Part shown: positions 649-64,000 of the stretch, piece after piece
Layout: each line of letters begins with the position of its first letter
Position numbering within the stretch: position 1 is the stretch's first letter
Origin: Blastocystis sp. Blastoise
Lineage: Eukaryota > Protista > Bigyra: Opalinata
Reading direction: 5' to 3'
Assembly (NCBI GenBank): GCA_039096225.1
Contig: JBBPEB010000009.1
Location: 1,178,001-1,242,000, forward strand
Length of the DNA stretch: 64,000 nt
Translations under genes and position numbers: made by a program
The notes under the pieces: generated by a model
Seen by the model: only the letters and a program-made list of their open reading frames with translations
What the model was told of the DNA's origin: nothing
Databases searched by the model: none

Positions 649-2231
649 TTAAATATAAATTCTTCCCCAGACTTCATAATCTTCTACTGTAAAATCATTA
701 ACAGAATTAGCATTATTAGTATTCACAAATAATGATGATTCTTGAGGAGTATTTATCTCTGCATAGCGTGTTGCATTACAATAAGAATTAGTATTACTAT
801 GACATTGATCACATATCGTTATATCACCACCAGATCCAAATACTGGACCATATGAAGAATTACAATATATAGCTTTACTTCTATCACTATTTGTATAATC
901 ATATTGAGCAGGAGGAATATTATGTTCATTACTTAATGTAAATAGAAACTCTTTAGAATAAGGTTTCCAACCTATATAAATGATATTGAATAATTAATAA
1001 AAAATAAATATACCAGTTGAACTATCCCAAATATTATCTGTATATCCTCCAAATATATTAATATTATTATTATGACCTTTATGTTTGATTATAGTCACTG
1101 TTTCTCCTTTATTATCACAATATTTATGGAATTCACTTACTTTATATTCATGTTCACTTGCTCTATATATATAAAATAATATAATATAATATAAATATAC
1201 CTAAATAACAATTTCCATTTCTTTTCTTTACCAAGCCAATTTACTAAAGGAGTTTCAAAACATTTCTTCTCAATTATTTTTGAGTTTATAAATACAGTTG
1301 GTTTTCCTATCATTGCTTCTTTCACAGCTTCCTTTCCTTGATCACCAAATAATTCAACCATTTCGTTCTCTAATAAATCCTTATTAATATCAATAATCTT
1401 TTCTTCTTCTATATCTATATATCCATTATTCACATATTCATTAATATATTCAATATATTCATATTTCTTATCAATATATAAACTATCTTCAATATTATTA
1501 TAATCAATAAATCCATTATCGTAATTTTTAACATAATTATTCCATAATCCATTCTTTATGAAATATTCTTTAATAATATCATTCTTATTTCCATTAATAA
1601 TCAAACTTATTTCATCTCCTTCTTCATATTTCTTCATCTTTCGATCTCTTCTTTCTCTACAATTGATTAATTCTATAGGAATTACTAAGCCACAAAATTC
1701 AAATAAATTCAATAATTCTAATTGTTCTTCATAAGAAAAATGATCAAAATCTACTTTCTTTCCATTCAAATAATCTAATAAATAATAAATAAAAGCATCA
1801 TTACCTCTATAATCAAGATATATAGATCCATCATTTGTTCTTTTTTCTTCTTCGCGTTGATCATCTATAAAAGAACCTTTCAAAGTATCTAAAACAGATT
1901 TCGATATTTGAAATACAGGACCTCTATTCGTAAACTGAATTAAATCATTATCATTATCATTATTATCATCCATATCCATCTTCATATCTTCATTATTATT
2001 CCTTTCATAAACACATTTCTTTTCAAATTCATTTCATTCGCCTTCCTTTTCAATACAATCATTTCCAATATGTTTAATAAGTCTATTAATCGATATTCCA
2101 GAATGTATTCCAAGATTCATTACTGATCCAAATACATTAACTACATCTTTCATCAATTCTTCATATATATTGATATCTTCCTTCAATCTATTGAATTTAT
2201 CAATATCAAATAACACCTTTTCTTTCACCAT
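649..2231 (-). pseudogene. BTB/POZ-like + TLDc domain protein, copy 1, interrupted by an in-frame TGA (2034-2036)
   Basis: ATG at 2231 (MVKEKVLFD). BTB-like segment FQISKSVLDTL…DGSIYLDY. TLDc motifs WKLLFR|ASEH, IFGGYT, GPVFG, DYEVWG across two GT-AG introns. TAA at 649-651. ORFs 2034..2258 and 1137..1985 are in the same frame. Confidence 0.75.
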
Positions 2232-3777
2232 TAATGAAATAATGCCAATTAAATACAAATAGTTGTTTCCCCTGTTTATTTTAAATTTTTAAAATTTCTT
2301 TTATTTTTTCGTTATTCTATTATTATTCATACATAATAATTAATATTATATTAATATTCCATATGATCTACAAAAAAATGCTATTAGTTTCTTAAAATAA
2401 AAACTTCACTATGGATCTTTACCTCATTGATTACTTGAAATAAATAATTGAGTATTAGTTAGAAATATAGAGGATGCTGAAGACAGAGTGGTATGCTGAA
2501 TTAGTATATATCTCTTGATTATTTTTCATTTTGATTAATAAATCTCTTATTTTAAGTATATGAATTTTTATTTTTATTTATATGATATACACATATTTAT
2601 ATATACTAATTATTATTATCTAGAAATGAATAACTATATTTTCTTGTAATCATTCCTGATTTCGGACTGAATTTAATAGATTATTATTTATTTTTATATC
2701 ATATTTATGAAATATGTTTCTAATCCTCTAATAGTATCTCTTGTATTGTCTGTTGATACAATTATCTCACCTTTTTTCAGTCTCCTTTTCTTACTCTTCC
2801 ATTTCTATTTTTATTTATTCTATACAATAATTTTTTAATATCTAAAAATCATACTCATAATTATAGTATATACTATATTATCTATATATATGATGAATAA
2901 CAACTATTTTTTGATATTTTATTCAATAATATATTATTGGTAATAGAAATGTATATAGTTTATAAATGTTGCTTATATATCAATAGATACATATAACTAA
3001 ATATAATTTTATTTTACCTATAATTATCCGTAATTCTCAAATAATTTTCTATATTTAAAAATTATTAAATATATATATATTTTAATAAGAGTAAAATCAG
3101 GAAATATTTTTTATTCTCATTGTATTTTTTATAAAATATATTTCTTGTCAAAATAGAATAGTATTAGTATGCTTACATTCATTAGTATTTATATTTAATT
3201 ATATTTATATTAAAACTTCATTATAAACTATTATATATACTGAAAATGAAAAATATGTTTCAGTAAATAATATGTTTTTAAGTTCTTTAGAACACTTGTT
3301 GAAAAAATATTTTATTAAATATAAAAAAAGTTATATACAAAACATGAACAAAAGCAAAAACAAAAAAGAATTATTTATAGTCTTATAATATATAATAAAT
3401 TGTTTATCAAGAAAGTCATTAACTAATCTATTCTATAAAACTAATGTTAAAAACATTGTTAATATACTTGAAGATATCATTGTAATAATGACAATTCTGT
3501 AGAAATATTTATATAGTTTATACATAGTGAATACAAATTAATTCACAATATACACTAAATACTATAATATATATATCATTTATATATGTTACTAAAATAT
3601 ATATATTTTTTTTGAGTCACTAGTATTTTCTTATTTTGAAATAAAACAAGAAACGATATACTTAATATATATTTATATATATACTTTATAACATTACTAA
3701 AAAAAACATGAAAAAACATGAAAAAAAGTAAAAATAAATAAATAATAAAAGATATAAAAATGGTATATACAAGAGAA

Positions 3778-4451
3778 TTAATAAAATGTATCAAATTCAT
3801 AACTAACATGATTTTCCTGAATAAATAAAGAATCACTCAATTGTTGTTTATACATAATAATTTGTTCATCTGAAATGTCTTTATCTATATAATATAATAA
3901 TATGAGATATAAATGATTATATGCATACTGATATTCATAATACACTCTTCTAATTGAGGAATCTTTCCAGTAGTAATAAAATCAATTAGTTTCGATAATT
4001 GTTCCTCATCATAAATATCTATAACAAAGAAATATTATTTAGAAAAATTATATATGAATACATATTATTAGATATGTTAGATTTTGAGCTTTATTATCAT
4101 TTATACAATTAAATAACTCTTGTATCTCAGATTTACTAATCTCTTCATCTATATATACATAATATGTTGTTATATATATATATATACCTTTTGTTCCATA
4201 AAATGCACCCATAAATGAATTACTATTATATTTAAATCGGAAAATTGAATTATTTGGATCATAAATATACTCAGTAATCCAATAATGATCTATAGAAATA
4301 TAATATATATGAATATAAATAGAATTAATATTATTATTTATGACATACCACCTAATTGAACAATACTTGAAGATGGAAAGTTATTATTATTCATAAAAGT
4401 ATAAAATGTTTTAATAAAAGAACTCCGCCATCTGTCTACACGAGAACCATC

Positions 4452-4482
<31 letters not shown>

Positions 4483-4972
4483 ATAATAATTTGTATTATT
4501 ATATACAATAAAAATATATATAGTATATACATGATATATAATAAGAATAGTAATATATATATATACAAAACTGGATATATTTTAGTTGAGGGAAATTATC
4601 TGTAGTATATAATTTGAAAAAGTTTTCATCTGATACATCATCAATAGACACAGAATCAAGATCTAAATTAATATTCATAAAAGAATTAGGATGAAATACA
4701 TAATATATTATAATTAAATAATATATATAAAATGTATACGTAGAATTAATTGAGTTGTATTATGGAAACAACCTTTATGAATTAATCGATTTATAGAAGT
4801 CATAGTCCAATCTAATAATAATAGTTAAATTAATTAAATATTCTATTACTAATTATATATATATATATATATAATTACATTCGATATCTACAATAGAAGC
4901 CTTAGGAATTAATTTCTCCATAATATTTTCATATACAGTAAAACCTTCAGAGGATGTGTTAAGGCTGATATC

Positions 4973-5061
<89 letters not shown>

Positions 5062-7174
5062 TATTTTATAATATAAATTACAATCAATTGTTAATTCATG
5101 AATATTATTAAACTTATTATCATTAAAAAGAGTTGATATCCATTCTAAATATTCTATACTTAACAAAGTATCAACTATAGATATTATGCAAAGAATTATA
5201 TAGATATAGATATATAGAATATACATAAAATAAATAACTTTTTCAAATTTTTTAATTTATTACTCTTTAAGAATCTTTCTAATGAATTTTTTTTATCAAT
5301 TTCATCTGGATTATTATTATTATTATTATTATCATTATTATCATTATCTTCAATATAATCAATATCATCACCTATAAATGAATAAATAGTAATATCATTA
5401 TTATATATAAACAATTTCTATTTTACATATAAAATAAATACGTAGAAATGATATAGCTGAGTTCTCAATATTTTTCTTATAGTTTTCAAAATACTCTAAT
5501 ATCTTTATATTTTTTGAACATGAAGAATAAACTTTAGAGTATATATATAAAATAAAATTTTAAAAATTAATATATATATATATGTCATACTAGAAATAAT
5601 ATCAAAGGTTATAAGATCTTTCTCAAATAATTCATTTAGATGAGGAAAACAATAAAACCACTCAGCTATATACAAAGTCAATAGATATCATTAATTATAT
5701 AGATAGTATTATGATCTTAAATTTCAATATATATAATACGTATATATGTGCCACTTATATTAATATGAATTGAATGAGTATAAATTATATTATCTAAAAA
5801 GAAAAACATTTCCTTTTTATTATCACACTCAATATAGTCTATTCGAATAGTATCAATCATTGATATTAAATTATCAGGAAATAGAGAATCAAAATTTTCA
5901 GTAGCTAAATTAAGAATAATAATTTTTTTATTAACATATAAATATACTTATAAAAATATTATAGTTGATAATATGTAATTTTGGGAAACATTCCTTTTTT
6001 AGTAAAGATAATTTAAACGATTCTATATATATAATATATAATATTGATTCTATTATTATATATATACGATCATCATAGATAAGTTCAGTAACATTTGGAA
6101 GTACATGAGTTGTCATTATTTTCATAAATAGACTCTCATCAATTTCATTAGTCAATTCTTTAACTATATAGAATGATAATATTAATAATGATAATACAAT
6201 ATAATACTCCATCGAACACTTAATGCAGTTAAAGAATCGAAAAGTTCTTCTTCAAGTAATTTCATAACAATAAAAGGATTATATTGAGTAGAATAATCTA
6301 AAACATATTATTTAATTTATATTATATATCTATTTACCTTTATTTAAAATGATTTTTGAAATAGACAAATAGGAAGGAAGAAGTAATAATTGAGCAATAC
6401 CATATATAGAAGATACTCCATTAATTCTATATAAGATATATAAGTATAAAGTATATAATATGAAATAATAATAGTATTTACATGAATGTTTTATCATTTG
6501 TTTTATCTATATATAATAATAATAAATGAAATAATATTATAATTATATATATACCATCATATTTAATACTGACTGTATCTATTAATGTATATTCATTGAC
6601 TATTTCATTTATTTCTACTTCTGAATAATCATTTGTATATATAGCTTCATTAACTATATATTTATATAATTTAGGTAATTCATTCTTTTCTCTTCTTTTA
6701 TTATACGAATCAATCAGTTTTTGTGAATAATATATTTTATTAAGATCTAAAGAAGAAATCTTATTATATTCATTCATTTCTGATTCAGTGTAATACTCAT
6801 ATTTTTCAGGATTCTCTATTTCATAATCATTATTAGAGAATAGGCGAATATATTCCATTATATATTCATCATTATTTGGATTTAATAATAGTTCAGTTTT
6901 CTTATAATGTGTAGTTACTATATATATTTATTAATAATATATATATATACATATACCATTTATTTTTGATTCTTCTAATGAAGGAAATATATCTTTAATA
7001 TTTGATGGACACATATATTCTATTGGAATATTTGATGAATAATCATCTATATATATAGTATTATTTAGGGTATATTAAATATATATACATGTAATTTCAA
7101 CTTTAGTAATATTCATCATTTTATTAAGAAGAGAATAATATAATAATTCATCTTTTCGTTGAGGAGAAAATAAT

Positions 7175-7246
<72 letters not shown>

Positions 7247-7750
7247 ATTTATATGTATTTTTTTCTTCCCTAAATTGAATAATTCTACAGGAATAATATT
7301 CTTCTCAATAATTTCCATATCATCTACATATTCATATACACTATACTTATTTTCTTTTAAATATTTGTAGAATAATTCTTTAATATGGTATAATAAATCA
7401 ATTGCTTTATTATTTTTTAGATCTACTGAGTACTCAACAAGTGTTTTATATATATCATAACTATCTTTCAAATTTAAAGAAGAGATATCCACGTTATCTT
7501 CCATTAAAAACTGAATCATTTTTTCCATATGAAAAGGAAGCATATCTATATAATAAATACAATCCTTATCTATATCAGTGTGTTTAATAGCATCATAAAA
7601 GGGTAACATGGGATATTTCTTAATAAATTCTTTAGAAATCCATAATTGCGTCTCATCTTGAAATGTAAACAAATCTAAAAGCATATAAATATCTAATATT
7701 CATAAATGTATACATTTATCTTCAGCTAATTCGGCTATGACTTCTGACAT
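3778..7750 (-). CDS. Multi-exon lineage-specific protein, N-terminal BTB-like region and degenerate LRR-like repeats, copy 1
   Basis: ATG 7750 (MSEVIAELAEDK|YLFTFQDE). Many GT-AG introns. Recurrent FPxLxxI motifs (FPKLHII, FPQLKYI, IPQLEEC). TAA 3778-3780. Clear paralog at 11.9-15.9 kb. Not every junction was verified. Confidence 0.65.
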
Positions 7751-8983
7751 GACTTATTAAACTATATAAACAATGATCATAAAATGAAATGAAGAAACGA
7801 CACTATTTAAAAGTATATAATATATAGATTCATGAAATTTACCGTAATAAACTAAATTTAAGACAATATTTAAATTATTTGTGAAACAACAAAATAAAAT
7901 AAATATGAAATAAGTTTTTTATTTCAATACAAAAACTAGTTTTTTTTTTCTAGTATTTCTTAATTATCATAAAAAGTGAAAAAATTATGATTAAGTGATA
8001 AGATTTGCTTCATAACCGCAATTTTTCCACAATTATTTTTTAAAATGAAAAATAGAAAATAATCAAGATTTTTCCAATTTTTTATTTCTTTTTTTTAATC
8101 ATTATGTTTAAGCCGTTTATATTAATAATATTTGCATTGATTGAATTCTTGAGGTTGTACTTGCTATCTACTATTTATTTGGAATGTATTGTAGAAATGA
8201 ATAAGAGAATTATTGTCGGTGAGTAGCTACTTATTGACTTATAGTTTATCTATGATATTCATCATATTGTCACAACTATGGTGAGCATTTTAAATACATT
8301 ATTTCAATAAAATTATGAACTACACTTGATCTTTTGTACAATGAGTTGAAAATAAGAAAAAACAAATATTATAAGTATGTTATTATTATTTGAAATATTT
8401 AATTATAATGAATTTAATATCTTATTATACGATAATTAATAAGAAATATAATTATTTTCTGTTTAAAAGAAAGAAATCTTCTTAATAGTTTATTTTTTTT
8501 TTTTTGATTATGAAAATAGATTATCTAAAGCATTTTAATGTAAAGATAGATAGATTAAAATAATAATTAATAAGTTGGTATATATAAACAAACCATATAC
8601 TTAATTTTTATACTATTTGTAATAACAGCAACTGAATGTATTTTTAACAAATATAAATATAAGTGAATGCCAAAAAAAAAATCAAATATTTAAAAGAATT
8701 TATATATATATTATTTTAAATAATTTATATATGTCAATCCTTTTATATAGCATATGAGAAAGAACTCAATTTAAAAAAATACAAAATTTTTATTAAATTC
8801 AATTTTGAAACTAAACTCATTAATAAACATAAACATATAATTAAAATAGACACTTTTAAAAATAATTAAATATATTAATAATAATAATAAAACATTAATT
8901 GTTAAAAAAATAAATGTAACAAAAAATATACATATATAAATTTATCTGAAAAAAATAATTTAAAAAAATATTGATACTTGTTC

Positions 8984-10604
8984 TTAAACTCTTCCCCATA
9001 CTTCATAATCTTCGACTGTAAAGTCATTTCTAGAATCACCATTATCAGTATTAACAAATAATGATGATTTTTGAAGAGTATTGAGTGTATCATAAGAACA
9101 TGCACTACAATAAGAACTAGCATTACTATGACATTGATTAGATATATAGATATCACTATTTCCAAATGTAGGACCACATGAAGAAGAACAATATATAGCA
9201 TTACTTCCATTACCACTTATATTATCATATTTAGTAGGAGGAATACCATGTTCATTAATTAGAGTAAATAGAAACTCCTTTGAATAAGGTTTATAAACTA
9301 TATAAATTATATTGAATAATTATACTGAATAATTATGTAAAATAAATAAATATATATACTATTTGAATCAGCCCAACTTTGATCAGTATATCCTCCAAAT
9401 ATATTAATATGATTATTATGACCTTTATGTTTGATTAAAGTCACTGTTTCTCCTTTATAATCACAAAAAAAATGAAATTCACATGCGTTATAATGATGTT
9501 CACTTGCTCTATATATATATAAATATAATACATAATAATAATAATATATAAATAATCATACCTGAATAATAATTTCCATTTCTTTTCAGTTCCAAGCCAA
9601 TTCATTAAGGAGGTTTCTATCATTTTATTAACTAGTATTTTTGTACCTTTAAAGCATTCTAAAGGAATCATTGCTTCTTTAGCAGCTTCCTTTCCTTTTT
9701 CACCAAATAATTCAATCATTTCTTTCTCTAATAATTTTTTATTAATAGTAATTATATTATATTCTTCTTTATTTATAAAACCATTATTTACATATTGAGT
9801 AATTTGTTCAATATATTTGAATGTTTTATTCACATATAAACTATCAGTTAGATGATTATAATCAGCATATCCATTATCATAATTCTTAACATAATCATTC
9901 CATAATCCACTCTTTATTAAATATTCTTTAATAATATCATTCTTATTGCCATTAATAATCAAATCTATTTCATCTTCTTCTTCAAGTTTCTTTTTCTTTA
10001 TATCTCTTCTTTCTCTACAATTTATTAATTCTATAGGAATCACTAATTCACAATATTCAAATAATTCTAATATTTCTAATTGTTGTTCATAAGAAAATTG
10101 AGTAAAATTGACTTTCTTTCCATTCAAATAATCTAATAAAATATAAGCAGCAGCATCATTTCCAGGATAATCAAGAAATATAGATCCATCATCTGTTCTA
10201 AGGTATTCTTCACATTGCTCTTGAATAAAAGAACGTTTCAAAGTATCTAAAATAGATTTCGATATTTGAAATACAGGACCACTATTTGTAAATCGTATCA
10301 AATCCATGTTATCATCATCACATTCATCGTGATATTTACGCTTATTCATATAATTATTTTTAATATTCTCTTCAGGGAAATCATCAAAAGAAGAAAAATC
10401 ACCAGCTAATTTAGGTTTATTTTCACTATAATCATTTCCAATATGTTTTATAAGTCTATTAATCGATATTCCAGAATGTATACCAAGATTCATTAAAGAA
10501 GAGAAAACACTAATTATATCTTTCATTAATTCTTCAAATACATTGATATCTTCCTTCAATATATTAATCTTTTCAGTATCAAATAATATATTTTCTTTCG
10601 CCAT
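8984..10604 (-). CDS. BTB/POZ-like + TLDc domain protein, copy 2 (intact)
   Basis: ATG 10604 (MAKENILFD). Same exon structure as copy 1, with WKLLFR|ASEH, IFGGYT, GPTFG and DYEVWGRV then TAA 8984-8986. Confidence 0.8.
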
Positions 10605-11911
10605 TTTCAAAAATAAAGAAATAAAAATAAATATAAAATTTTGTTATTTTAAAAAATAAACAAAAGAATTCACTACTAAGAAATTCTAGTTAAAAACTGA
10701 ATATGGAGAATACGTTAATTTACATTTAAAGTTTTAAAATAATCGTGAATATTTATTAGTTTTCTTTTTCATAATGTTTGATTATTCTCGTTTTATTACT
10801 TGAATTTAATAAAAAATCATGATTTCTAACATTTTTATTTTTTTATTTTACTACGTTATTATTCATTCAGTTATCATGTACAATGATGGTTATCAGACTA
10901 AACTATTTCAGAATGAATGTGATCTACAAGAATATTTTTTAAATAGAGTAAAATAAGGGTAAAATGTAAATTTTCTATTGTGTTAGCTAATATAAGTAGT
11001 TTATTACATACTGATTATAAGTTAAAACATTATTCATATTTATAATTTACAGTAATTATTATAAATATTCTCCTGTATTTTCATTTTGATTTGTAATCTT
11101 CTGAATACGCTCTATTTGAACATTAATTTATATCAATAATACTTAAATATGTCTGATCAATAAAAACCACCTATAATAAGTATGATTATAAATACATTTT
11201 TGGAATCATTCCAATTGTTTTCAATATTTTTATATTTTTATTACTTGTCTATTATTTCTATGTTATATTTCTCTAATTATTTAATAATCAGTTGGTTTCT
11301 ATATATACATTCTTTCTAAACTTTAAATAACAAGCAAATTTTAAAAAATATATACATTTATTACCCAATAGTTTAATCAATTATTAGTATCTGAAAACAG
11401 TTTAATTTATTTAAAAACAAAGTCGTTTCCTTAGTTATAGATCATTGAGTTCTATTTAGTTAACTTTAAAACTATGAATTAATTTATTTTATAAAATAAT
11501 CATTTTCTTTCATTCTTTAGAGTTTTTATAATATACAAAAATACATATTTTATGATTCATTTATTTCTTACAAAAAAAATTTGTTATTCCATTATTTTAG
11601 TTCTTATTCATTTAAAGAAAATATTTTTTTGAATATTCTTCTTCGTATGTTGTTAACATATCAAGATCAAATAACCAGAAAAAAAGCTATATTAAAAAAA
11701 TGAAATTTTAGTATATACTATTTTATGATCTCTTTTGGTGTATCTAAGTTGGAGAGTTTTTTCATTAATTAAGATAATTTATTAAATTTAGGAACTTTTT
11801 TTTTGCTTATGCAATAACTAAGTTCATTTAATAAACGACATCAATCTTTAATACTACTTGTTTAATACTTTAAAAATAACAAAATAATAGCATATCTATA
11901 GAATAATAATA

Positions 11912-14900
11912 CTAAATAGTTTTAAATTTATAATAAACATGATTTTTCTGAATAAACGATGAATCTTTCAACTGTTGTTCATTCACATTCATTTGTTTAT
12001 ATGATATACCAATACCTATATTATTTATTGTATTCATATAAATAATTATATATATATACTTGTATGAACAATAAACTCTTTCAATATAGGAATCTTTCCA
12101 GTAATAATATAATTAATAAATTTTGATAATTGTTTGTCATTATAAATATCTATAAAAAAAATTAAATATTATATCAATATTTAATATTAATATACATATT
12201 TCAAAATATCTACAGTTTTGAGTTCTATTTTCGTTAATACAATCAAATAATGTTTCAATCTCATATTTATTGATCAATTGATCTATATATAAATATATAC
12301 TAGGCTAGCTATTATACATATATATACTTTCTGTTCCAATAATTGATTCAATAGATGAACTATTATCATATTTACATCGAAAAATAGAAGTATTGGGATT
12401 ATAAATATAATTATCACCAGAATAACTGTCTATATAAAAAATAATAATATAAATTTATATAAATATTCTTATTCTTATTAGTATACCCATTATTTTTATT
12501 GCAGTTAATATTGGAAAGTTATTATTACAAATATATTTATATAATTCTTGAATAAAGATAATTAACAACTCTTTATCCCAATATTTACCTATTGATATAT
12601 AAAATATTTAATAAAAAATAATAATTATATCATAAAACTTAATTTATAAATATTTATAATACAATATATTATTAATATATACGTAACTCGATATATTTTA
12701 ATTGATGGAAATTGTTTGTAGTATATAGTATATAAAAGTTATCATCAGGTAGATCATAAGCTTCTAGAATTATGTTAATATCAACATAATATAGTACATT
12801 ATATATAATCATTGAAAAGTAATATGTTTATATAATATATATACCTAGAGTTAATTGAGTAGTATTAAGAAAACAATTAGTAATAATTAATTTGTTTATA
12901 AAAGTTATATAGCAATCTAAGAATAGTTGTGAAATTAATTAATACATTATTATATACTATCCTGTTTATATATATAAATACATACATTTTATTGTGACAG
13001 TAGAAGCCTTAGGAATTATTTTCTTTAATATAGTCTCATATACCGTTAAATATGCAGGTGATAAGTCTTTCTTAATAAAATATACTATATATATATATAT
13101 ACTAAATAATATAATATACAATCAATTGCTAGTTCATGAATAGTTTTAAATTTATTATCATTAAACAGAGTTGATATCCATGTTAAATAGTTTATATTCA
13201 TAGTTTTACTAACTATAGAGATCATATAAAGTATAATACTTATCTAAATATAAAGAAAGAATATACATGAAATAGTTAAATCACTTAAATGTTCTAATAA
13301 ATGACTTTTAAAAAAGATTTCTAAAGATTCTTTCATATCAATTTCATTTGGATTATTATTATCATATTCTTCATTGTCTATAAATGAATAAATAGTAGTA
13401 TAAATATTATATGTCAACTATGTATTTCTTTAATATATAGGAATACTATTTAGTTTTATTTTTAAAGAATTAATGTTTTGTTTATAATTTATAAAATAAT
13501 CTAATTTTTTGATATTTACAAAATTAGAAGAATCAACTATATAATAGAGAATATAGTATACTAGAAATGAATAAATAGGAAATTTATATATATACTATAA
13601 AGTTCATGAATAAATAGAAGATCGTTCTCAATTAATTCATTTAAATGTGGAAAATAATAAATCAAATTATCTATATAAAAACAACGAAATATAATTAATT
13701 ATAGGTTTATAGTTTTATAGTCTGAATTATATAGATATTAATCATAATAATATATATATATATATATACATACCTATTCCATCAATATAAATACTATGAG
13801 TATATATTAAATTATCTAAAAGAGAAGCTATTTCTGGTTTATGGCTATTATCAATATCATGTATATGAATAGTATCTATTAGAGATATTAAATTCTTAGG
13901 AAATAATGAACCAAAATTATCAATTGCTAGATTAAGAATAATAGTTTTTTATTAATATATATAAGTTTACTTATATCAATCTCATATTGGATAATATGTA
14001 AATTTGGGAAGCATTGTTTCTTTATTAAAGATAATTGGAATGATTCTATATATATATATATATATATATATACTAATATATATACCATAATCATATATAA
14101 TTTCAGTAACATTTGGAAAAATATGAGTATTCATTATTTTAATATAAGAATTATGATTAGTTTTATCAGCTAATCCTTTAACTATATTAAATGATAGTAT
14201 GAATAATAATAATTATAAATACTCCATTTTACACTTAATATAGTTAAAGAATCAAAAACACCATCTTCTAGTGATTTCATAACAATTAAAGAAGCAAATC
14301 TTTTATAAATATCTAAAATAAAATAGTATTTATATTTTTAGATATATTTACCTGTATCAAACATTATTTTTGTAATAGAATAATATGAAAGAAGACTCAA
14401 TAATTGAGATATACCATAATTAGAAAAAATTGATTGAATACTATTTAATATATGTATATTTTAAATAGACTTATTATAAAAATATAATATTAAATAATAA
14501 TAATTATATACTAGAATGTTTTATCATTGGTGTTCTCTATATAATAATCAAGTTATATGTTATTATAATATATATATATACCATCAAATTGAATCATGAT
14601 TCTATCTTTTATTATATCTTCATCGATCGACTTATTTATGTCTACTTCTGAATAATCATTTGTATATATTGCTTCATTAATTACATTTTTATATAATTTC
14701 GGTAATTGATTGTCTTCTTTTCTTTTATTATAACTCCAAAGAAGATCATTAGAACATTTTAATTTATTAGTATTAACCAAAGAAATATTATTATATTCAT
14801 TCATTTCTCTTTCTGTATAATAATCATATGTTTCAGAATTATCTATATTATTTCCATATCTATATAATAGATGAATATATCTTTTTATATATTCATTACT

Positions 14901-15298
14901 ATTTGGATTTAATAATACTTCACTTTCTTTATAATTTGTAATTACTATATATTTTTTGTTTATATATATATTTGGTTATATATTTTTTTGTTTATATATA
15001 TATATTTGGTTATATATTTGTTATATTTTTTGTTTATATATATATATATTTGTTTATATATATAATTTATATATATATACCAGTTATTATTAATTCTTTT
15101 AAAGAAGGGAATATATCTTTAATACACGATGGACATATATATTCTAATGGAATATTTGAGGAATATTGATCTATATATTATGTAATTGTAATTAAATTAC
15201 TATATATATACATTCAATATCCACTTTAGTAATATTCATCATTCTAAAAAGAAACAAAAAATAGAATAATTTTTCTTTTCGTTGAGTTGTAAATAATC

Positions 15299-15353
<55 letters not shown>

Positions 15354-15871
15354 ATTATTATATATACCATTTATATGTATTTCTTTCTCTTCTGAATTAA
15401 ATAATTCCATGGGAATATTGACATTTTCATGACGTTTGATAGACTCTACATATTTATATATACTATAATGATTCTCATTCAAATAATTATTGAATAATTC
15501 CTTAATATGGCATAATAAATCACTTTTCTTTTCATTATCAATCGAAATTGAATACACAAGAAATAGTTGATATATGTCGAAACTTTCTTTCAAATCTAAT
15601 GAAGAAATATCCATATTATCTTCCATAAAAAAATGAATCATTTTTTCTGTGTTAAATGAAGGCATATCTACATAATAACTACCATCATCATATCTATCAG
15701 ACTGCTGAACAATATCATAAAAGGGAAACTCAGGATATTTCTCAATAAATTTTTTAGGAATCCAAAATTTCGTCTCGTCTTGAAATGTGAACAAATCTAA
15801 TAATATATAAATATTCTATATTTATATGCAGTACATTCCTGTTCCAATGATTCGGCTGCACACTCTGACAT
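11912..15871 (-). CDS. Multi-exon BTB-like/LRR-like protein, copy 2
   Basis: ATG 15871 (MSECAAESLEQE|YLFTFQDE). Shares blocks (NEAIYTNDYSEV, FIQ.NHV.Y.F) and intron positions with copy 1. TAG 11912-11914. Confidence 0.65.
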
Positions 15872-25837: not shown

Positions 25838-28440
25838 ATGAAACCAATAAGTTATTATAAGAATATATTTGCTAACGTATGTAAAACCAGTGGGTATACT
25901 ATCAAAACTGCATGGTTGAATTCGGAAAGTAAGATAAGTTTTTAACGATTCTGTTTATTTTTTGTAGATGAAACGCTTATAACTTTAGAGAATTGTTTAG
26001 ATATTGAAAAATGCTCAGGGAGTAGTCGATTATGTACTAGAAAAATAGATAATGAAAAGAAATCTCTTGAAATTGTGTCTGCAAACAATGATTTAACTGG
26101 GATTCGTATGATAAAATATTCAAAAGATATGAGTGCCTATATCTACGTATATATGATATTTTTGGTAATACTATTAACATGTATAGATGACAAATAGTCA
26201 TTTTTTATTCTATAATAAGGAGAACAAAATGAGTTCAGTTGATTATAGTGCTGTTCATAATCAGGTTTATACTGATGGACCTTTTTCAGGTTTCGATTGG
26301 AATGAAAAGAATAATGAAATCATGTAAATAGATTTATTTTTTTATTCTCTATGTTTTTTTTTTAATAATTCTAAATATCTTTTAGTTTATTATATTTCTA
26401 TACATATACATATGTATGATAATATATATAGATATATTGCAGAACCAACTGAAAAAGATCGAAGAGAAATCATGGAAATAAATGTATTTATTTTTTATTA
26501 TTCATAATAATTTATAACAATGATTTTTTAATAATATATATATTTTTTTAATATTCATGGTAATTATAGGATTCTTTGTATGATCATTATGATATTTCTT
26601 CTTGGGGCGAAGGATATGATTCAACATTTATTCCTTCTCTTTATATACTATATAATATATATACATGTCCTGTAATACAAGTATAGATATTATAATTTTA
26701 TTTATATAAAAATTCTTGTATTACTATTATTCTCTATATTTTTTATATGTTATTTTTATAAATATTCTTTTATCGTTATTATGCTCAGTATCTTTTATAT
26801 ATTATTAATATATATTATATATTATATATATAGATGATTCATAATGTATTACCTGTTTCACATGGTCAATGTTTTTATATACCTCAATATAATCCTCAAA
26901 TCCCTCATTCTGTTGAGAATATTTGTTATTCAGAACTACAAAATGTGTCTATTCTTAATTCTCCTATTCATTCTATAAATAATAATAATTATGAAAATAT
27001 TGAGAAATACATCGGAGTCGTATGTTATCCCCGTGAAACTCCTTATGGAATGATGCACTGTTTTCAAAGACAATCTGAAATATATATATATGGAATTAAT
27101 AAAGAAAACTCAGTTATATATAAAGAAAAAATATCTTTAGATTGTGAGATCGCTTATTCCCCGCGAATATCTCCTGATCATAATTATATTGTATATTTAA
27201 GTAAACCTAAATCTATATATATAAATGAAAGTGGTTCTATTCTTCAATTATATAATCTTCAAACACATGTAATTATTATATATTTATTTTATTATTATAT
27301 TTATTATAATCATTATTATTCTATTTATTTTCTTATTTTATACTAATAATTATTATTATATAGACAACATCTACACTTTTATCTTTATGTGAAGATCCTA
27401 AACCAAATGAATTCCCAGGGTTATTTTGCATGGAATTACCCTATTCTCCATGGTCAACAGATTCTCAATATCCAAATATATATTTATATAACTATTTATA
27501 TATATATTTATATATAACTATTTCTCATGAATTAAATTTATTATAAATTTAAATATATCCTTAATTTATTGGTTTTTACATCTCTCTATATAAATACTGT
27601 AAATAAAAGTGTTATTAGTATATTACATATTAATATTAATCATCCTCTATATACATCGGCTAATTCTATTCCTCATTCTCTTACTAATAATATATCTATT
27701 CCTGTTTCTTCTTCTTCTACTCTTTCTTCTTCTTCTACTCTTTCTTCTCCTACTACTCTTTCTATTCCTATTTCTTCATGTATATATAATTCTAATGAGA
27801 AAGCTAGTTATGAATACTTATTATATACACAACAAGGAATTCTTGTAAAATATAGGTATATTATATCATATATATCTATTATAAATAACTTTATTTTTCT
27901 ATATATTAAATAGTTCTACTATAATTGTATTATTATATATTATCTTCTATAATATTACTATATATATATAAATATATATATATATAGTACTCCTTCTTAT
28001 CCTTCTACATTAATGATTCTTGACCCCTTATCCGGTACTATTCTATATAAAGATCAAGAAGAACAAAGTATTCCCACGGAAATTCAAGATATGTATTGGG
28101 ATATTCTCACAATTCCCACGAAAACGTATTCTATGAATATGTATATCTATATTCTAATATATAAATTATAGCAGTTACATAGATTATATATTAATTATAA
28201 ATACACAATAATAGCATTTTTCTATATTCCTTTATATATATATATTTCTAGTCAGTCCAATCAAACATTTGAGTCCACAATTCTAATCCCTCAGTTAGAT
28301 CCCTCAAAACTATCGGATTATTCAACGAAATCAACCAATAAAATACCTCTTCTTCTTTGGTTACATGGAGGACCTCATCGTAGTTTCCCCGCGGTTTTTG
28401 ACATTATTACAAATTATTATGTAACACTTGGGTATATATA

Positions 28441-32181: not shown

Positions 32182-39717
<7,536 letters not shown>

Positions 39718-41612: not shown

Positions 41613-43321
41613 TTATTCTTCAAAGATTTGTGATACAGATTGTTTAGAATGAATAGCACGAATACAATTGGCAAGAAGAGGAGCAACAGATAAAGTAATA
41701 ATCTTTTCATTTTCACGAGAAGCAACAGAAAGAGGAACAGTATTTAAGACAACAACTTGTTCAAGGACACTCTTAGTAATATTATCATTAGCATTCTTAG
41801 AGAAAACACCATGAGAAGCAAAAGCGAAAACACGTTTAGCACCAGATTCTCTGAGTTTCATAGCAGCTTTACATAAAGTACCAGCAGTATCAATCATATC
41901 ATCAACAATAACACAATCACAACCAGATACACTACCAACTAAATCCATTTGTTCAATTTGGCCAGGTTTACCTCTTTGTTTAATAATCATAGCAAGACCA
42001 GATTCTATTTGTTTACGAGCTAAACCTTCTCTGAATTTCTTAACTCTATAAACACCACCAGCATCAGGAGAAACAATAACAGGGTTTTCAAGTTTAATTT
42101 GATTAGAGAAATAATCAACACCAACAACACCACCTTGAAGATTATCTACAGGAACACGAGGTCCAAAGAAACCTTGGAATAAATAAATAAATATAATAAT
42201 AGTAATATAATACTATAATAATATATATATATATATATAGATACTTGAATTTGACCACAGTGGAGATCAACAGCAACAACTCTATCGACTCCCATAGACT
42301 CAAGGAGACGAGCTACATCAGCAGCAGAAATAGGAACACGACTAGTCATCTATATATATATATAATAGTATATAACATTTGATTTTTAAAAATAAAACAA
42401 AATTAAAATATTGAAAACAAATACAATATTAACAATAAAATAAAAAATTAAACATACCTTTCTATCTTGTCTAGCATAACCATAATAAGGAATAACAGCA
42501 GTAATCTTACGAGCAGAAGCACGTCTTACAGTAGAGATCATAAGCATTAATTCCATAAGGTTATCGTTAATATTAGGAGGACAAGTAGATTGAATAATAT
42601 AGATATCCTTTCCTCTAACAGGTTCATTAATATTGACATTAACTTCACCATCAGCATAACGAGAAACACTACAGTTACCAAGTTTAATACCAAGTTCAGT
42701 GCAAATTTCTTCAGCTAATACACGATTAGAATTACCAGAGAAAATTCTGAGGTTAGATTTTAAGGCACCTATGAGAAATAGGTATATATATATTAAAAAT
42801 ATAGAATAATAAAAAAATAATAATAATAAGCAATAAAACAAAAGCAAAACACACGCACACAAATAAACAAAAAATAAATAAATAAATAACAGAACTCAAG
42901 GATTTAAATAAATAAAAAAATAGCAATGACACACTGTTAGAGATGGAAGCAGAATGTTTTTTGGTAATTTCAGAAACAGAAACCTAAACAAATAAGTATA
43001 ATAAATAGAAAAGTGAAAAAAAACTTACAGAGTCTTCATTAGCGTAGGCATTAGAGAAGGCAGTATAACCAGCAAAAGTGGCAGCAGCAAAACCAGCAGC
43101 TCCCTATATAAGAGATTTGAATAAAAAATGAAAAAAGAAACGAATTTTTATAAATAAACTAACAAAACGATGATTTGAAATAAAGAAGATTCTATAAATA
43201 CAGCAAGAAGAAGACCAAAGTTATTTTGATTAGTCTTCGTTGAAGAGACAACATTACGAGTTAAAAACTTAGAGGAGTTAAAACCCATACGCATAACCTT
43301 AGCAGCACATCTGTTAAACAT
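41613..43321 (-). CDS. PRPS: Ribose-phosphate pyrophosphokinase with N-terminal organelle-targeting-like extension
   Basis: [26 protein letters not shown]|[23 protein letters not shown]. Six exons; ATG 43321 ([14 protein letters not shown]). Confidence 0.95.
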
Positions 43322-43709: not shown

Positions 43710-44517
43710 ATGCTTGCTAAGAGTATGACTTCTGTTGCTAAGCTCAACTTCGTCAGAGCTAGCAGTACTGCTAAGGTTTGGGTTGATAAAAATACCAAGG
43801 TCATCTGCCAAGGTTTAACTGGTAAAACTGGTACTTTCCATGCTAAACAATGTATGGAATATGGTACTAAGTTTGTAGGAGGAATCAACCCTAAAAAGGC
43901 TGGTACTACTCATATTGGTCTTCCCATCTTCGGTTCTATTAAGGAAGCATGTTCTCTTTAATGTTTCTTTTTATTCTATTTGCTTATTATGATTATTTTA
44001 AACAAATCATTTTATTATGTTTTTTTTTTTTAAATATTTATACTTATGTTTAAGCTAAACAAGAAACTGATTGTGATTGCAATCTTCTTTTTGTCCCTCC
44101 TCCAAATGCCGCTCAAGCTATCTTAGATTCTATTGCTGCTGAAATTCCTTTAGTCGTTTGTATTACTGAAGGTATTCCTCAACAAGATATGGTTCGTGTA
44201 TGCTTTTATTATTATTATTATTGTTTTTATTGTTTATATTATTTATATTATTTTTTAAATATTTTTTTATTGTTTATATTATTTTCTTATTTTTTTAAAT
44301 ATTTTTTTATTTTTTTTTAAATATTTTTTTATCTATATAATATACAATATATGTTAAGAGAGCTCTTAGAGATCAAAATAAGACTAGACTTATTGGACCT
44401 AACTGTCCTGGTATTATTAAACCTGGTGAATGTAAGATTGGTATTATGCCTGGTTATATTCATAAGGCCGGTAAAATCGGTATGTTTTATTATTATAATC
44501 ATTATATTTATTATAAT

Positions 44518-44562
<45 letters not shown>

Positions 44563-45278
44563 TTAAATATCAATAATAATTTTCTTAATAATCTACACTA
44601 TTTCTTATAAATAAATATATAAAAATCGGTATTGTATCTCGTTCTGGTACCCTTACTTATGAAGCTGTTTACCAAACTACTCAATATGGTTTAGGTCAAT
44701 CTACTGTCGTTGGTATTGGTGGTGATCCTTTCAATGGTACTAACTTCATTGATTGTATTGAACGTTTTACTAATGATCCTCAAACTGAAGGTATTGTTAT
44801 GATTGGTGAAATCGGTGGTACTGCTGAAGAAGATGCTTCTGAATGGTTAATGAAATATGGTGATCCTAATAAACCTGTTGTCGGTTTCATTGCTGGACGT
44901 ACTGCTCCTCCAGGCAGAAGAATGGGTATTTATTTATTGATTATTATTTATTTATTTATTATTTTATTTGTATATCTTTTTATATATATATATATATTTT
45001 TGCTTACATAGAATAATCATATATTAATAATAATATATATATGAATGGGTCATGCTGGTGCTATTATTTCTAACGGTAAGGGTACTGCTGAAGCTAAGAT
45101 GGCTGCTATGAATGTATGTTTTTATCTATTTAATTAAAAAAAAAAATTTAATGTATTCTATAAATCTATATTAATATTATATGTATCTATATATGCTGCT
45201 CATATTACTGTTTCTGATTCTCCTGCTCAAATCGGTCTTAAGATGTTCGAAGCTATGAAGAGAGCTGGTAAAATCTAA
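43710..45278 (+). CDS. SUCLG1: Succinyl-CoA synthetase alpha subunit (317 aa), five non-canonical introns
   Basis: Exons 43710-43946, 44054-44197, 44353-44479, 44629-44925, 45049-45113 and 45195-45278 total 954 nt. Motifs [43 protein letters not shown]|HAGA (phospho-His). Short mitochondrial-type presequence. Confidence 0.95.
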
Positions 45279-52239: not shown

Positions 52240-53116
52240 ATTTTATAATTAATTTAGAATCGTAAGGGATCATTGAGATTTAAAAAAAAATGTTTTTTTG
52301 GGGAAACCAAAAAATTGTTTTGTTCATATAGATGTAATCTAAGTGCGGTTGAATGAGGTTTTTACATTTTATGGTGATAAGATATATTATTTATTCAAAG
52401 AAGAGAGTATTATTGATTCTACAGTACTTTTTGAAATTTTATATAATTCTCTTCATATTATTTGTCTGATATTTCATTTGAAAATGATTGTGTGATCATT
52501 TGAATATATATGATGTGAATCTTTGTGATATATAGTATTGTGAACAATAAGAATTTCTTTTTTTTTATGAATCACTTAGTTATGTATGATAAATGATAGA
52601 AGAATATTATGATTCCCTCAAATCATGATCTTAGAATATTATCGACATCAAATAATTGATATTTTCTAATTTAATAATAGAGAAAACTAATTATGAGTCT
52701 TATTTTGTTCTAATACAGATGAATAACAAACAAGAATATATAGTAAGCGATGACAGAATAAGAATATAATGCAATACATACTATAATGTATCCATAATGA
52801 TATATAATAAAAGAATGTATTAAAAATAGAACACAAATAAAAAAATATATAATATTTCTTTACTGAATATAAACTAAAAAAAAAACAAATGACTACTATT
52901 GTTATGTCTGTAAGCAATATGAATAAATAAAATATATATGAATAAAATAGAGAAAGATGGAATATATATATGTATTGAAACAAGATAATATAAAATACTA
53001 TATAAATTATAATTGAAAAACTAATATAAAGAATATATATTGTTAGTGTTGAAATAATTTGGATGTTTTCAATATTATTTATTAAATAGATATTTATATA
53101 TATTAACCATCATCAA

Positions 53117-54295
53117 TTAATTTTCAGAAATAGCTATATAAAGTATATATAAAGAAATAATATAAAGTATATATATATATATATACGTTGATATTTAGGA
53201 ACACCTTTTGTACCATTTTCACGCTCTACAAGATACTATATAATATATAATATATAATAATAATAAAAATAATAATATATATAAATATTAAAAAAATAAA
53301 TAAATCGTTTTTAAATATAAAAAGAAAATATTCATTTAAAAAAAATAATTATATATATAAATATACTTTTTCCCAGTTTTCTTTGAGACGAAATGTTTTG
53401 CATTGTTCGTTGACAGTAAATTGAGGCATAGAAAGAAGAAGGTCGTGTAATAAAACTGCATCTAAAGTTAACCTAATATATAAATAATAATAATAATAAT
53501 GATAATGATAATAAGAATAAAAATAACATAATAATCATAATAATAAATATCATAATAAACAAAATAAAAAGTATTCTATTTCTCCTCTAAATAACAATAT
53601 ATATATATACATTTGAATAGCAGGAATAAGTGTTAATACAGTAATAGGAATATAACCTTCAATATCCATATACTGACGTAAAAATAAATTCTTTTCTAAA
53701 TTTTCATCTTGAAAACATAATTCACTATATAAAAGAATAAATATAATAATAAATATAATAAAAATAATAATAAATATAATAATATAATAATAAATATAAT
53801 AATAAATATAATAATAAATATAATAATAAATATAATAATAAATATAATAATAAATATAATATTAACTATATACATCTGTGATTTTACATGTTCTTTAAGG
53901 GATTTTAACGATTGTTCAGTTTCATAAGAAGGAAAACTATAGAAAATAAGTCCTTAACTATTAATAAAGTCTTTTATTTAAAATAATACATACAATACAC
54001 CATTAATAATAACACCACCTTGAACTTTTTTAGGTATAGAATTGTAAACACCTGAAAAAAATAACTTTAAAAACAATTAAAGTAAAGAAAACATACCTTT
54101 AGGAAGGAATCCACGTCTACGATAACGACGTCTATGAATACAATAGATTTGAAGATCAAAAATCATACTCATTTTCAGGTATATCAACTTCGGCAGGAAC
54201 AATAGTATATTTTATAGATTGAGTCTAGATTTTTCGATATATATTAAACAAAATAGTGTTGAAATTACATTTTGAATGTGTTTAGCGGGATCCAT
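53117..54295 (-). CDS. Small La-motif (LARP-like) RNA-binding protein
   Basis: Spliced VKSQI|ELCFQDENLEKNLFLRQYMDIEGYIPI matches the La motif. Nine short exons with consistent phases. ATG 54295, TAA 53117-53119. Absent from the ORF track. Confidence 0.8.
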
Positions 54296-55029
54296 ACTGG
54301 GCGACCTATACATTAAAAATTATAATTACTTGATAACAATAAAAAGATGATTATATCTCATAATAATAAAGAGATACAAGTTTAAGAAATAAATAAAAGC
54401 TAATAATCAAATAATAAGCAACAAATGCAGATTAACAAGCAGAAAACAGAATTAGAAAACAAAAAAAAAGAAACAAAACACCGATTAACTGACTGGTTTT
54501 TATACGAGAAATTCTTCAATAATTGGTTTATTCATAAAAGACCAATAGGTTTATATGAATATCTTTTATTTAATTGGATAACTTGATGATCAATATAAAA
54601 AAATATTTTGGATAAATTCATTATTTCTAAATTCTTTGGGATATATAGAATTAATTAGGACATTTTAAAATCATTTATAAAGAAAAGAGGATAGTGAACC
54701 ATTGATTAAAAATAAAAATGAAAAATGATTTTCGAAATATTGCTGATGTTTAATTGATTGAAACTACTTTTCAAGGAATAGAAGATATCTTTTAAATAAA
54801 AATAAACTGATCGAAAGGTGAACAAAAAACAAAATGACAAAAAAATGACCTTAAAAACAAGATAATAACAAACAAAATATATATTCTTATTTAAATAACA
54901 TATATATATTTCAATTCATATAAATAAGTAACAATTAAATAAAAAAAAAAATAGAAAAGCGAGAAAATACAAAAGGAATAAAAGAGTTTTTTCATTAAAA
55001 TTTATATATAAAATAACATAAAGAGAATT

Positions 55030-63916
<8,887 letters not shown>

Positions 63917-64000
63917 CTATATATTATTATTAAAATTTACACATATTATTATTATATTATTATATTATTATTAATATACTAATTATATATAAATAATATT

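Follow-up and report, generated by a model that had tools for sequence, protein, structure and literature searches.

Odd intron ends in a Blastocystis succinyl-CoA ligase alpha gene: probable overwriting of intron bases by spliced RNA reads during assembly polishing

Among the described introns with ends other than GT and AG, the introners of Amoebophrya (PMC7789003) are comparable to those of the succinyl-CoA ligase alpha (SCS-alpha) gene considered here, since in both the boundaries of introns with such ends are spanned by short direct repeats. In Amoebophrya, more than 60% of introns are non-canonical, and these avoid conserved genes (PMC7789003). Unlike the introners, the introns with odd ends in the present genome have no terminal inverted repeats of 8-20 nt, form a minority of the introns, sit at ancient positions and are enriched in conserved genes. 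They are closer to the U2-type GT-AG introns of Blastocystis, with which they share the donor GTAT(A/G)T, an AT-rich body and the length (81-155 nt, sample median 105) as well as, for introns 1 and 4, the positions in other Blastocystis. In the assembly, the departure from this type consists of one terminal base per affected end that is off GT or AG and equals the base of the mRNA. A further point of comparison is a short-read polishing error that arises from unspliced alignment of RNA reads under a majority vote of the POLCA or Polypolish type, in which the first mismatch is likewise replaced by the read base, depth is needed, and high expression together with chance similarity favors the change. 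In Polypolish, a base counts as valid above 50% of the depth or 5 reads (PMC8812927). The SCS-alpha case differs from this type of error in that the use of RNA reads is unstated in the assembly paper, and our literature search found no paper describing a polishing error caused by spliced RNA.

The SCS-alpha gene spans positions 43710-45278 on the plus strand of the window, the whole stretch of 64,000 nt that was analyzed, and comprises six exons and 317 codons (Table 1). When joined by script, the exons add up to 954 nt with no internal stop, in agreement with the initial annotation, which had described them as intact. The encoded protein contains the domains PF02629 and PF00549 (Pfam) and, with the same domains and the catalytic GHAG motif as known succinyl-CoA ligase alpha proteins, displays no oddity of its own. 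Homology searches were made exon by exon: mammalian SCS alpha matched exon 4, the CoA-ligase region, with an E value of 3e-43, and exon 4 was 92-95% identical to its nearest, Blastocystis-like homologs. The search with exon 1 found no close relative, the DNA pattern of exon 4 had no match among the metagenome contigs, and exact look-ups of the ORFs of the window returned no match. The gene is present as a single copy in the genome (33.3 Mb, 34 contigs, GC content about 22%), and since it is single-copy and its frame is intact, five real splice-killing changes are unlikely.

Table 1. Exons and introns of the SCS-alpha gene and an affected intron of a second gene in the window
Feature	Position	Strand	Description
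SCS-alpha exon 1	43710..43946	+	ATG, short N-terminal leader, start of CoA-binding domain; PF02629 positions 1-57
SCS-alpha intron 1	43947..44053	+	107 nt, GC..AA; changed 43948 (C for T) and 44053 (A for G)
SCS-alpha exon 2	44054..44197	+	PF02629 positions 58-97
SCS-alpha intron 2	44198..44352	+	155 nt, GT..AT; changed 44352 (T for G)
SCS-alpha exon 3	44353..44479	+	95% identical to P0089 residues 19-60
SCS-alpha intron 3	44480..44628	+	149 nt, GT..CG; changed 44627 (C for A), probably also 44624 and 44622
SCS-alpha exon 4	44629..44925	+	CoA-ligase domain; PF00549
SCS-alpha intron 4	44926..45048	+	123 nt, GT..GG; changed 45047 (G for A), probably also 45044 and 45043
SCS-alpha exon 5	45049..45113	+	catalytic His motif GHAG straddles the intron 4 junction (translation; same flank in L081)
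SCS-alpha intron 5	45114..45194	+	81 nt, GT..AT; changed 45194 (T for G)
SCS-alpha exon 6	45195..45278	+	TAA stop; matches the C-terminal end of P0094 at 58% identity
PRPP synthetase intron	42174..42244	-	GT..AA after exon end CAA; overwriting pattern as in SCS-alpha

The five introns, with the coordinates and ends listed in Table 1, had been proposed in the initial annotation and were borne out by the sequence check, as was the ordinary character of their bodies, which like the donors are unremarkable for this genome. Junctions 2 and 3 were set by P0089, a 95% identical Blastocystis protein that is intronless at both sites; protein identity could fix them because L081, a contig from a metagenome that represents a close relative (95% protein identity), lacks introns 2 and 3. 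Junctions 1 and 4 were set by orthologous introns in L081-L083, and junction 5 by the reading frame and the sole good-scoring parse. Each odd end is a GT or an AG with a single base altered (43948 C, 44053 A, 44352 T, 44627 C, 45047 G and 45194 T). Counted outward from the junction, the altered base is in every case the first one at which a canonical intron and the mRNA would disagree, and it has become that of the mRNA, so that the earlier claim of deviant bases that all match the mRNA holds for 6/6 changed dinucleotide bases of this gene. The direct repeats reported across the junctions are present (AAGC, TGT, AAAATCGGTAT, GAATGGGT and ATG at introns 1-5, corresponding to 4, 3, 11, 8 and 3 nt) but do not constitute a feature in their own right; the ends of exon and intron resemble each other in part by nature, and the changed bases have extended this similarity. 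Introns 3 and 4 carry further bases that are rare in acceptors and equal the mRNA (A at -5, A at -7 and G at -6, found in 13%, 14% and 4% of the genome's acceptors), with joint frequencies of 0.009 and 0.004 for the extra atypical bases of the two introns, and this suggests stepwise overwriting in more than one round.

The donors of SCS-alpha follow the U2-type motif, four of the five being GT and the fifth, GCATGT, being one base off and GT in the orthologs. An AG acceptor is absent from the assembly at all five introns and present in the orthologs of introns 1 and 4. The ortholog of intron 4 (L081:599-629) occupies the same site between identical exon flanks and is a GT..TAG intron of 31 nt; in L081, intron 1 has TAG at its 3' end, and the intron 1 orthologs in L082 and L083, two other Blastocystis contigs, are GT..TAG introns of 32 nt. 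Because introns 1 and 4 are shared as GT..AG introns with other Blastocystis, they are old canonical introns and not recent lineage-specific insertions with target duplications. Canonical orthologs by themselves leave room for a true lineage-specific change. A U12-type identity of the SCS-alpha introns was rejected, as their donors (GCATGT, GTATGC, GTATGT, GTATTT and GTATGT) differ from the RTATCCTT that, with the branch point TCCTTAAC, characterizes this type. Elsewhere in the genome, an intron of an Arp4-like gene (L019:1725-1875; G000:C5:451795-451945, plus strand) has the donor ATATCTTT, a branch-like TTCTTAAT and a CAC acceptor, and its removal yields AKAPTCITFAMGR; it is likely a real minor-class U12-type AT-AC intron that was not overwritten.

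For a survey of intron ends, a gene parser was trained on the window together with 54 merged loci that family searches had returned (279 kb). Each intron flanked on both sides by a well-scoring exon was then scored for boundaries of the canonical, the mRNA-matching and any other type, and the non-canonical set was curated by hand following this ab initio parse; the strict parse was used, while a low-penalty parse with many false non-canonical calls at gene ends was dropped. The 253 confident introns contained 420 ends able to show a change, 18 of which were changed, and 18/18 were of the mRNA-matching type; no clear non-canonical end with a base unlike the mRNA was found among the surveyed introns. 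SCS-alpha accounted for six changed ends out of seven testable ones, compared to 18/420 (about 4%) in the genome sample, and a further 12, donors as well as acceptors, were distributed over the approximately 250 introns of other genes. All 11 changed ends whose boundary is set by protein conservation match the mRNA, for which the chance expectation is (1/6)^11 = 3e-9. Ten parses were excluded from the count; apart from one U12 AT-AC intron and one additional intron with overwriting, these were canonical or located in unconserved sequence, and they included no clear non-matching site.

Codon bias, which we take to track expression, served as the expression proxy. The initial annotation had suggested a genome-wide comparison with expression level, and by this proxy the rate of changed ends rises as anticipated, from 6/379 in the remaining genes to 12/41 in strongly codon-biased genes (p=2e-9); with SCS-alpha left out, the comparison was 6/34 versus 6/379 (p=1e-4). 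The number of admissible overhang lengths mattered as well. In strongly biased genes, 3/25, 6/12 and 3/4 ends were changed at 1, 2 and at least 3 admissible lengths, respectively, and in weakly biased genes 3/14 ends with at least 5 admissible lengths were changed versus 3/365 (p=8e-4; rank test p=2e-4). A simple overhang model nevertheless over-predicts, because 29 of the 41 testable ends in strongly biased genes were untouched and because in intron 1 of SCS-beta2 the less favored end was affected, the end with 4 admissible overhangs being unchanged and the one with a single admissible overhang being changed. Uneven read starts could be the cause of such untouched or less favored ends. The side bias expected from end trimming by Polypolish was not significant (12/211 versus 6/209, p=0.23).

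Closer examination of individual genes outside SCS-alpha revealed donors in which one base was changed and the remaining motif was intact, such as CTAAGTT in CCT2. SCS-beta2 has the same donor CTAAGTT where its paralog SCS-beta1 reads GTAAGTT at the same position, and the donor of Arp2 is TTATATA. In a carrier gene the acceptor is still AG, since the mRNA has AG there too, while the bases at -3/-4 agree with the mRNA; a rule of this kind would not be expected of a splicing mechanism. A mitochondrial carrier intron (L054; G000:C7 about 164382-164500, plus strand) has an 11-nt flanking repeat, CTGAAGGATAT, with the donor GATATAT and the acceptor CTGAAG, and is consistent with overwriting past the dinucleotide. 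The SCS-beta paralogs L034/L035 (G000:C3:1637774-1639230, minus strand) and L032 (G000:C2:159418-159512, minus strand) share intron positions and together exhibit four overwritten ends (CT donor, AT donor, AA acceptor and AT acceptor). Within the window, the PRPP synthetase gene, a neighbor of SCS-alpha, contains, besides the intron included in Table 1, another conserved intron (42350-42457) that is canonical. A probable AT..AA intron with both ends equal to the mRNA was also noted in a peptidase-like gene (27476-27593, plus strand), which has weak codon bias and a boundary that lies outside homology support.

We consider it highly likely that the odd ends of SCS-alpha are an assembly artefact that arose when spliced RNA reads overwrote intron bases during polishing, and in the true genome all five introns of this gene are very probably of the ordinary U2-type GT..AG kind. 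Of three options in the initial annotation this was the one judged most parsimonious, and it is supported by the mRNA-match rule, the expression proxy, the dependence on overhangs and the canonical orthologous introns; support for the other two, repeat-guided splicing or excision and partial gene conversion, was not found. BWA-MEM scores a mismatch at 4 and clipping at 5. If an unspliced aligner was used to place poly(A) mRNA reads during the short-read polishing of a nanopore assembly, a spliced read running a few bases past the exon end would stay unclipped where its overhang is cheaper than clipping, which allows for one mismatch, and would put the base of the neighboring exon onto the first differing intron position. 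Where expression is very high, these overhangs would outnumber the sparse reads that come from the AT-rich intron, and the polisher would write the mRNA base, while the extra bases of introns 3 and 4 would come from more than one polishing round.

We infer that RNA reads entered the polishing. The assembly appears to be that of the tortoise isolate Rus-B, for which three Polypolish rounds with Illumina DNA are described and the use of RNA is never stated (PMC12129017). The input of POLCA, the last polishing step, is unspecified in the same methods, a sentence of the Results is compatible with RNA, and the deposited reads listed in the paper are RNA only (PMC12129017). It is possible that RNA was a polishing input undocumented in the paper. 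The best public run contained 0.44 of the words of the stretch, with 0.41-0.50 expected for spliced mRNA, and the introns of the stretch were present in none of the public runs checked by word content.

That the bases are instead real, with mRNA-templated changes creeping into old introns of highly expressed genes and introns with odd ends still being spliced, we regard as unlikely; if they were, RNA-mediated intron loss would be visible here at an intermediate stage, and the spliceosome would have to be unusually tolerant. The specific form of this idea, in which a few bases of the mRNA reached the intron ends of highly expressed genes through reverse-transcribed or RNA-templated repair, so that intron loss is seen midway and a tolerant spliceosome copes with the result, is very unlikely, even though it predicts the same match to the mRNA and the same link to expression and is compatible with an RNA-like run and its share of spliced-mRNA words (0.44 versus 0.41-0.50). 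In the established model, recombination with cDNA is expected to delete the entire intron rather than to alter 1-3 terminal bases and keep the body. Five independent events would be required in one single-copy essential gene, and the spliceosome would have to tolerate CG, GG, AT and AA acceptors as well as CT, TT and AT donors in a genome in which about 96% of testable ends are strictly GT/AG. Moreover, aligner scoring gives rise to changes of just this kind, which hit the first mismatch only and come more readily when more bases match beyond it.

There is very little probability, in our estimation, that these are real repeat-guided non-canonical introns that, as in the introners of Amoebophrya, the nonconventional introns of euglenids or those of Fritillaria, are spliced or excised via short direct repeats. 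A direct repeat of 3-11 nt does occur at every SCS-alpha intron and the two ends of intron 4 show stronger pairing than shuffled sequences (p=0.013, in one of five such tests), but in the other four of the five introns end-to-end pairing was no better than in shuffles, with no terminal inverted repeat found to join their ends. The ordinary bodies and donors and the old GT..AG sites of introns 1 and 4 in relatives likewise oppose such a class, as does the distribution of affected ends, which at about 4% and with a preference for conserved, highly expressed genes contrasts with that in Amoebophrya. Leftover nanopore errors that involve no RNA are hardly credible as the source: Rus-B was sequenced on R9 cells and the introns have about 10% GC, but random errors would be expected to match the mRNA at the first mismatch in 1/6 of cases, against 11/11 homology-fixed ends observed, and would not be expected to track codon bias.

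With overwriting by RNA reads as the preferred explanation, the odd ends most likely are neither a feature of the organism nor a new kind of splicing and amount to a data-quality warning on a public genome. About 4% of the sampled testable ends, and about 30% of those in strongly codon-biased genes, appear overwritten, and such ends would break ab initio gene models of core metabolic genes in the public assembly.

Several additional observations were made in the genome and the window. Near-identical, intron-containing copies of an HSP70-family gene (L029 and L030, G000:C33:707398 and 1073906) are located about 366 kb apart on one contig, and identical-scoring copies of EF-1alpha and of cytosolic HSP70 were found on different contigs; these duplicated HSP70-family and EF-1alpha copies could be segmental duplications or retained haplotypes. 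A pair of actin genes was only 79% identical. On the minus strand of the window, positions 1137-15800 contain paralogous ORF repeats of an unknown family (1137-1985 with 9441-10610, 7148-7684 with 15192-15794, and 6478-6858 with 14553-14804), which points to tandem duplication of a block. Also on this strand, an intronless ORF of 2198 aa (32182-38778) has repeated cysteine-containing units and, toward the C-terminus, a hydrophobic stretch, in the manner of large surface proteins, and a gene with many introns (52254-64000) resembles the catalytic subunit of DNA polymerase epsilon; its inspected conserved introns, one of them 43 nt long, were canonical.
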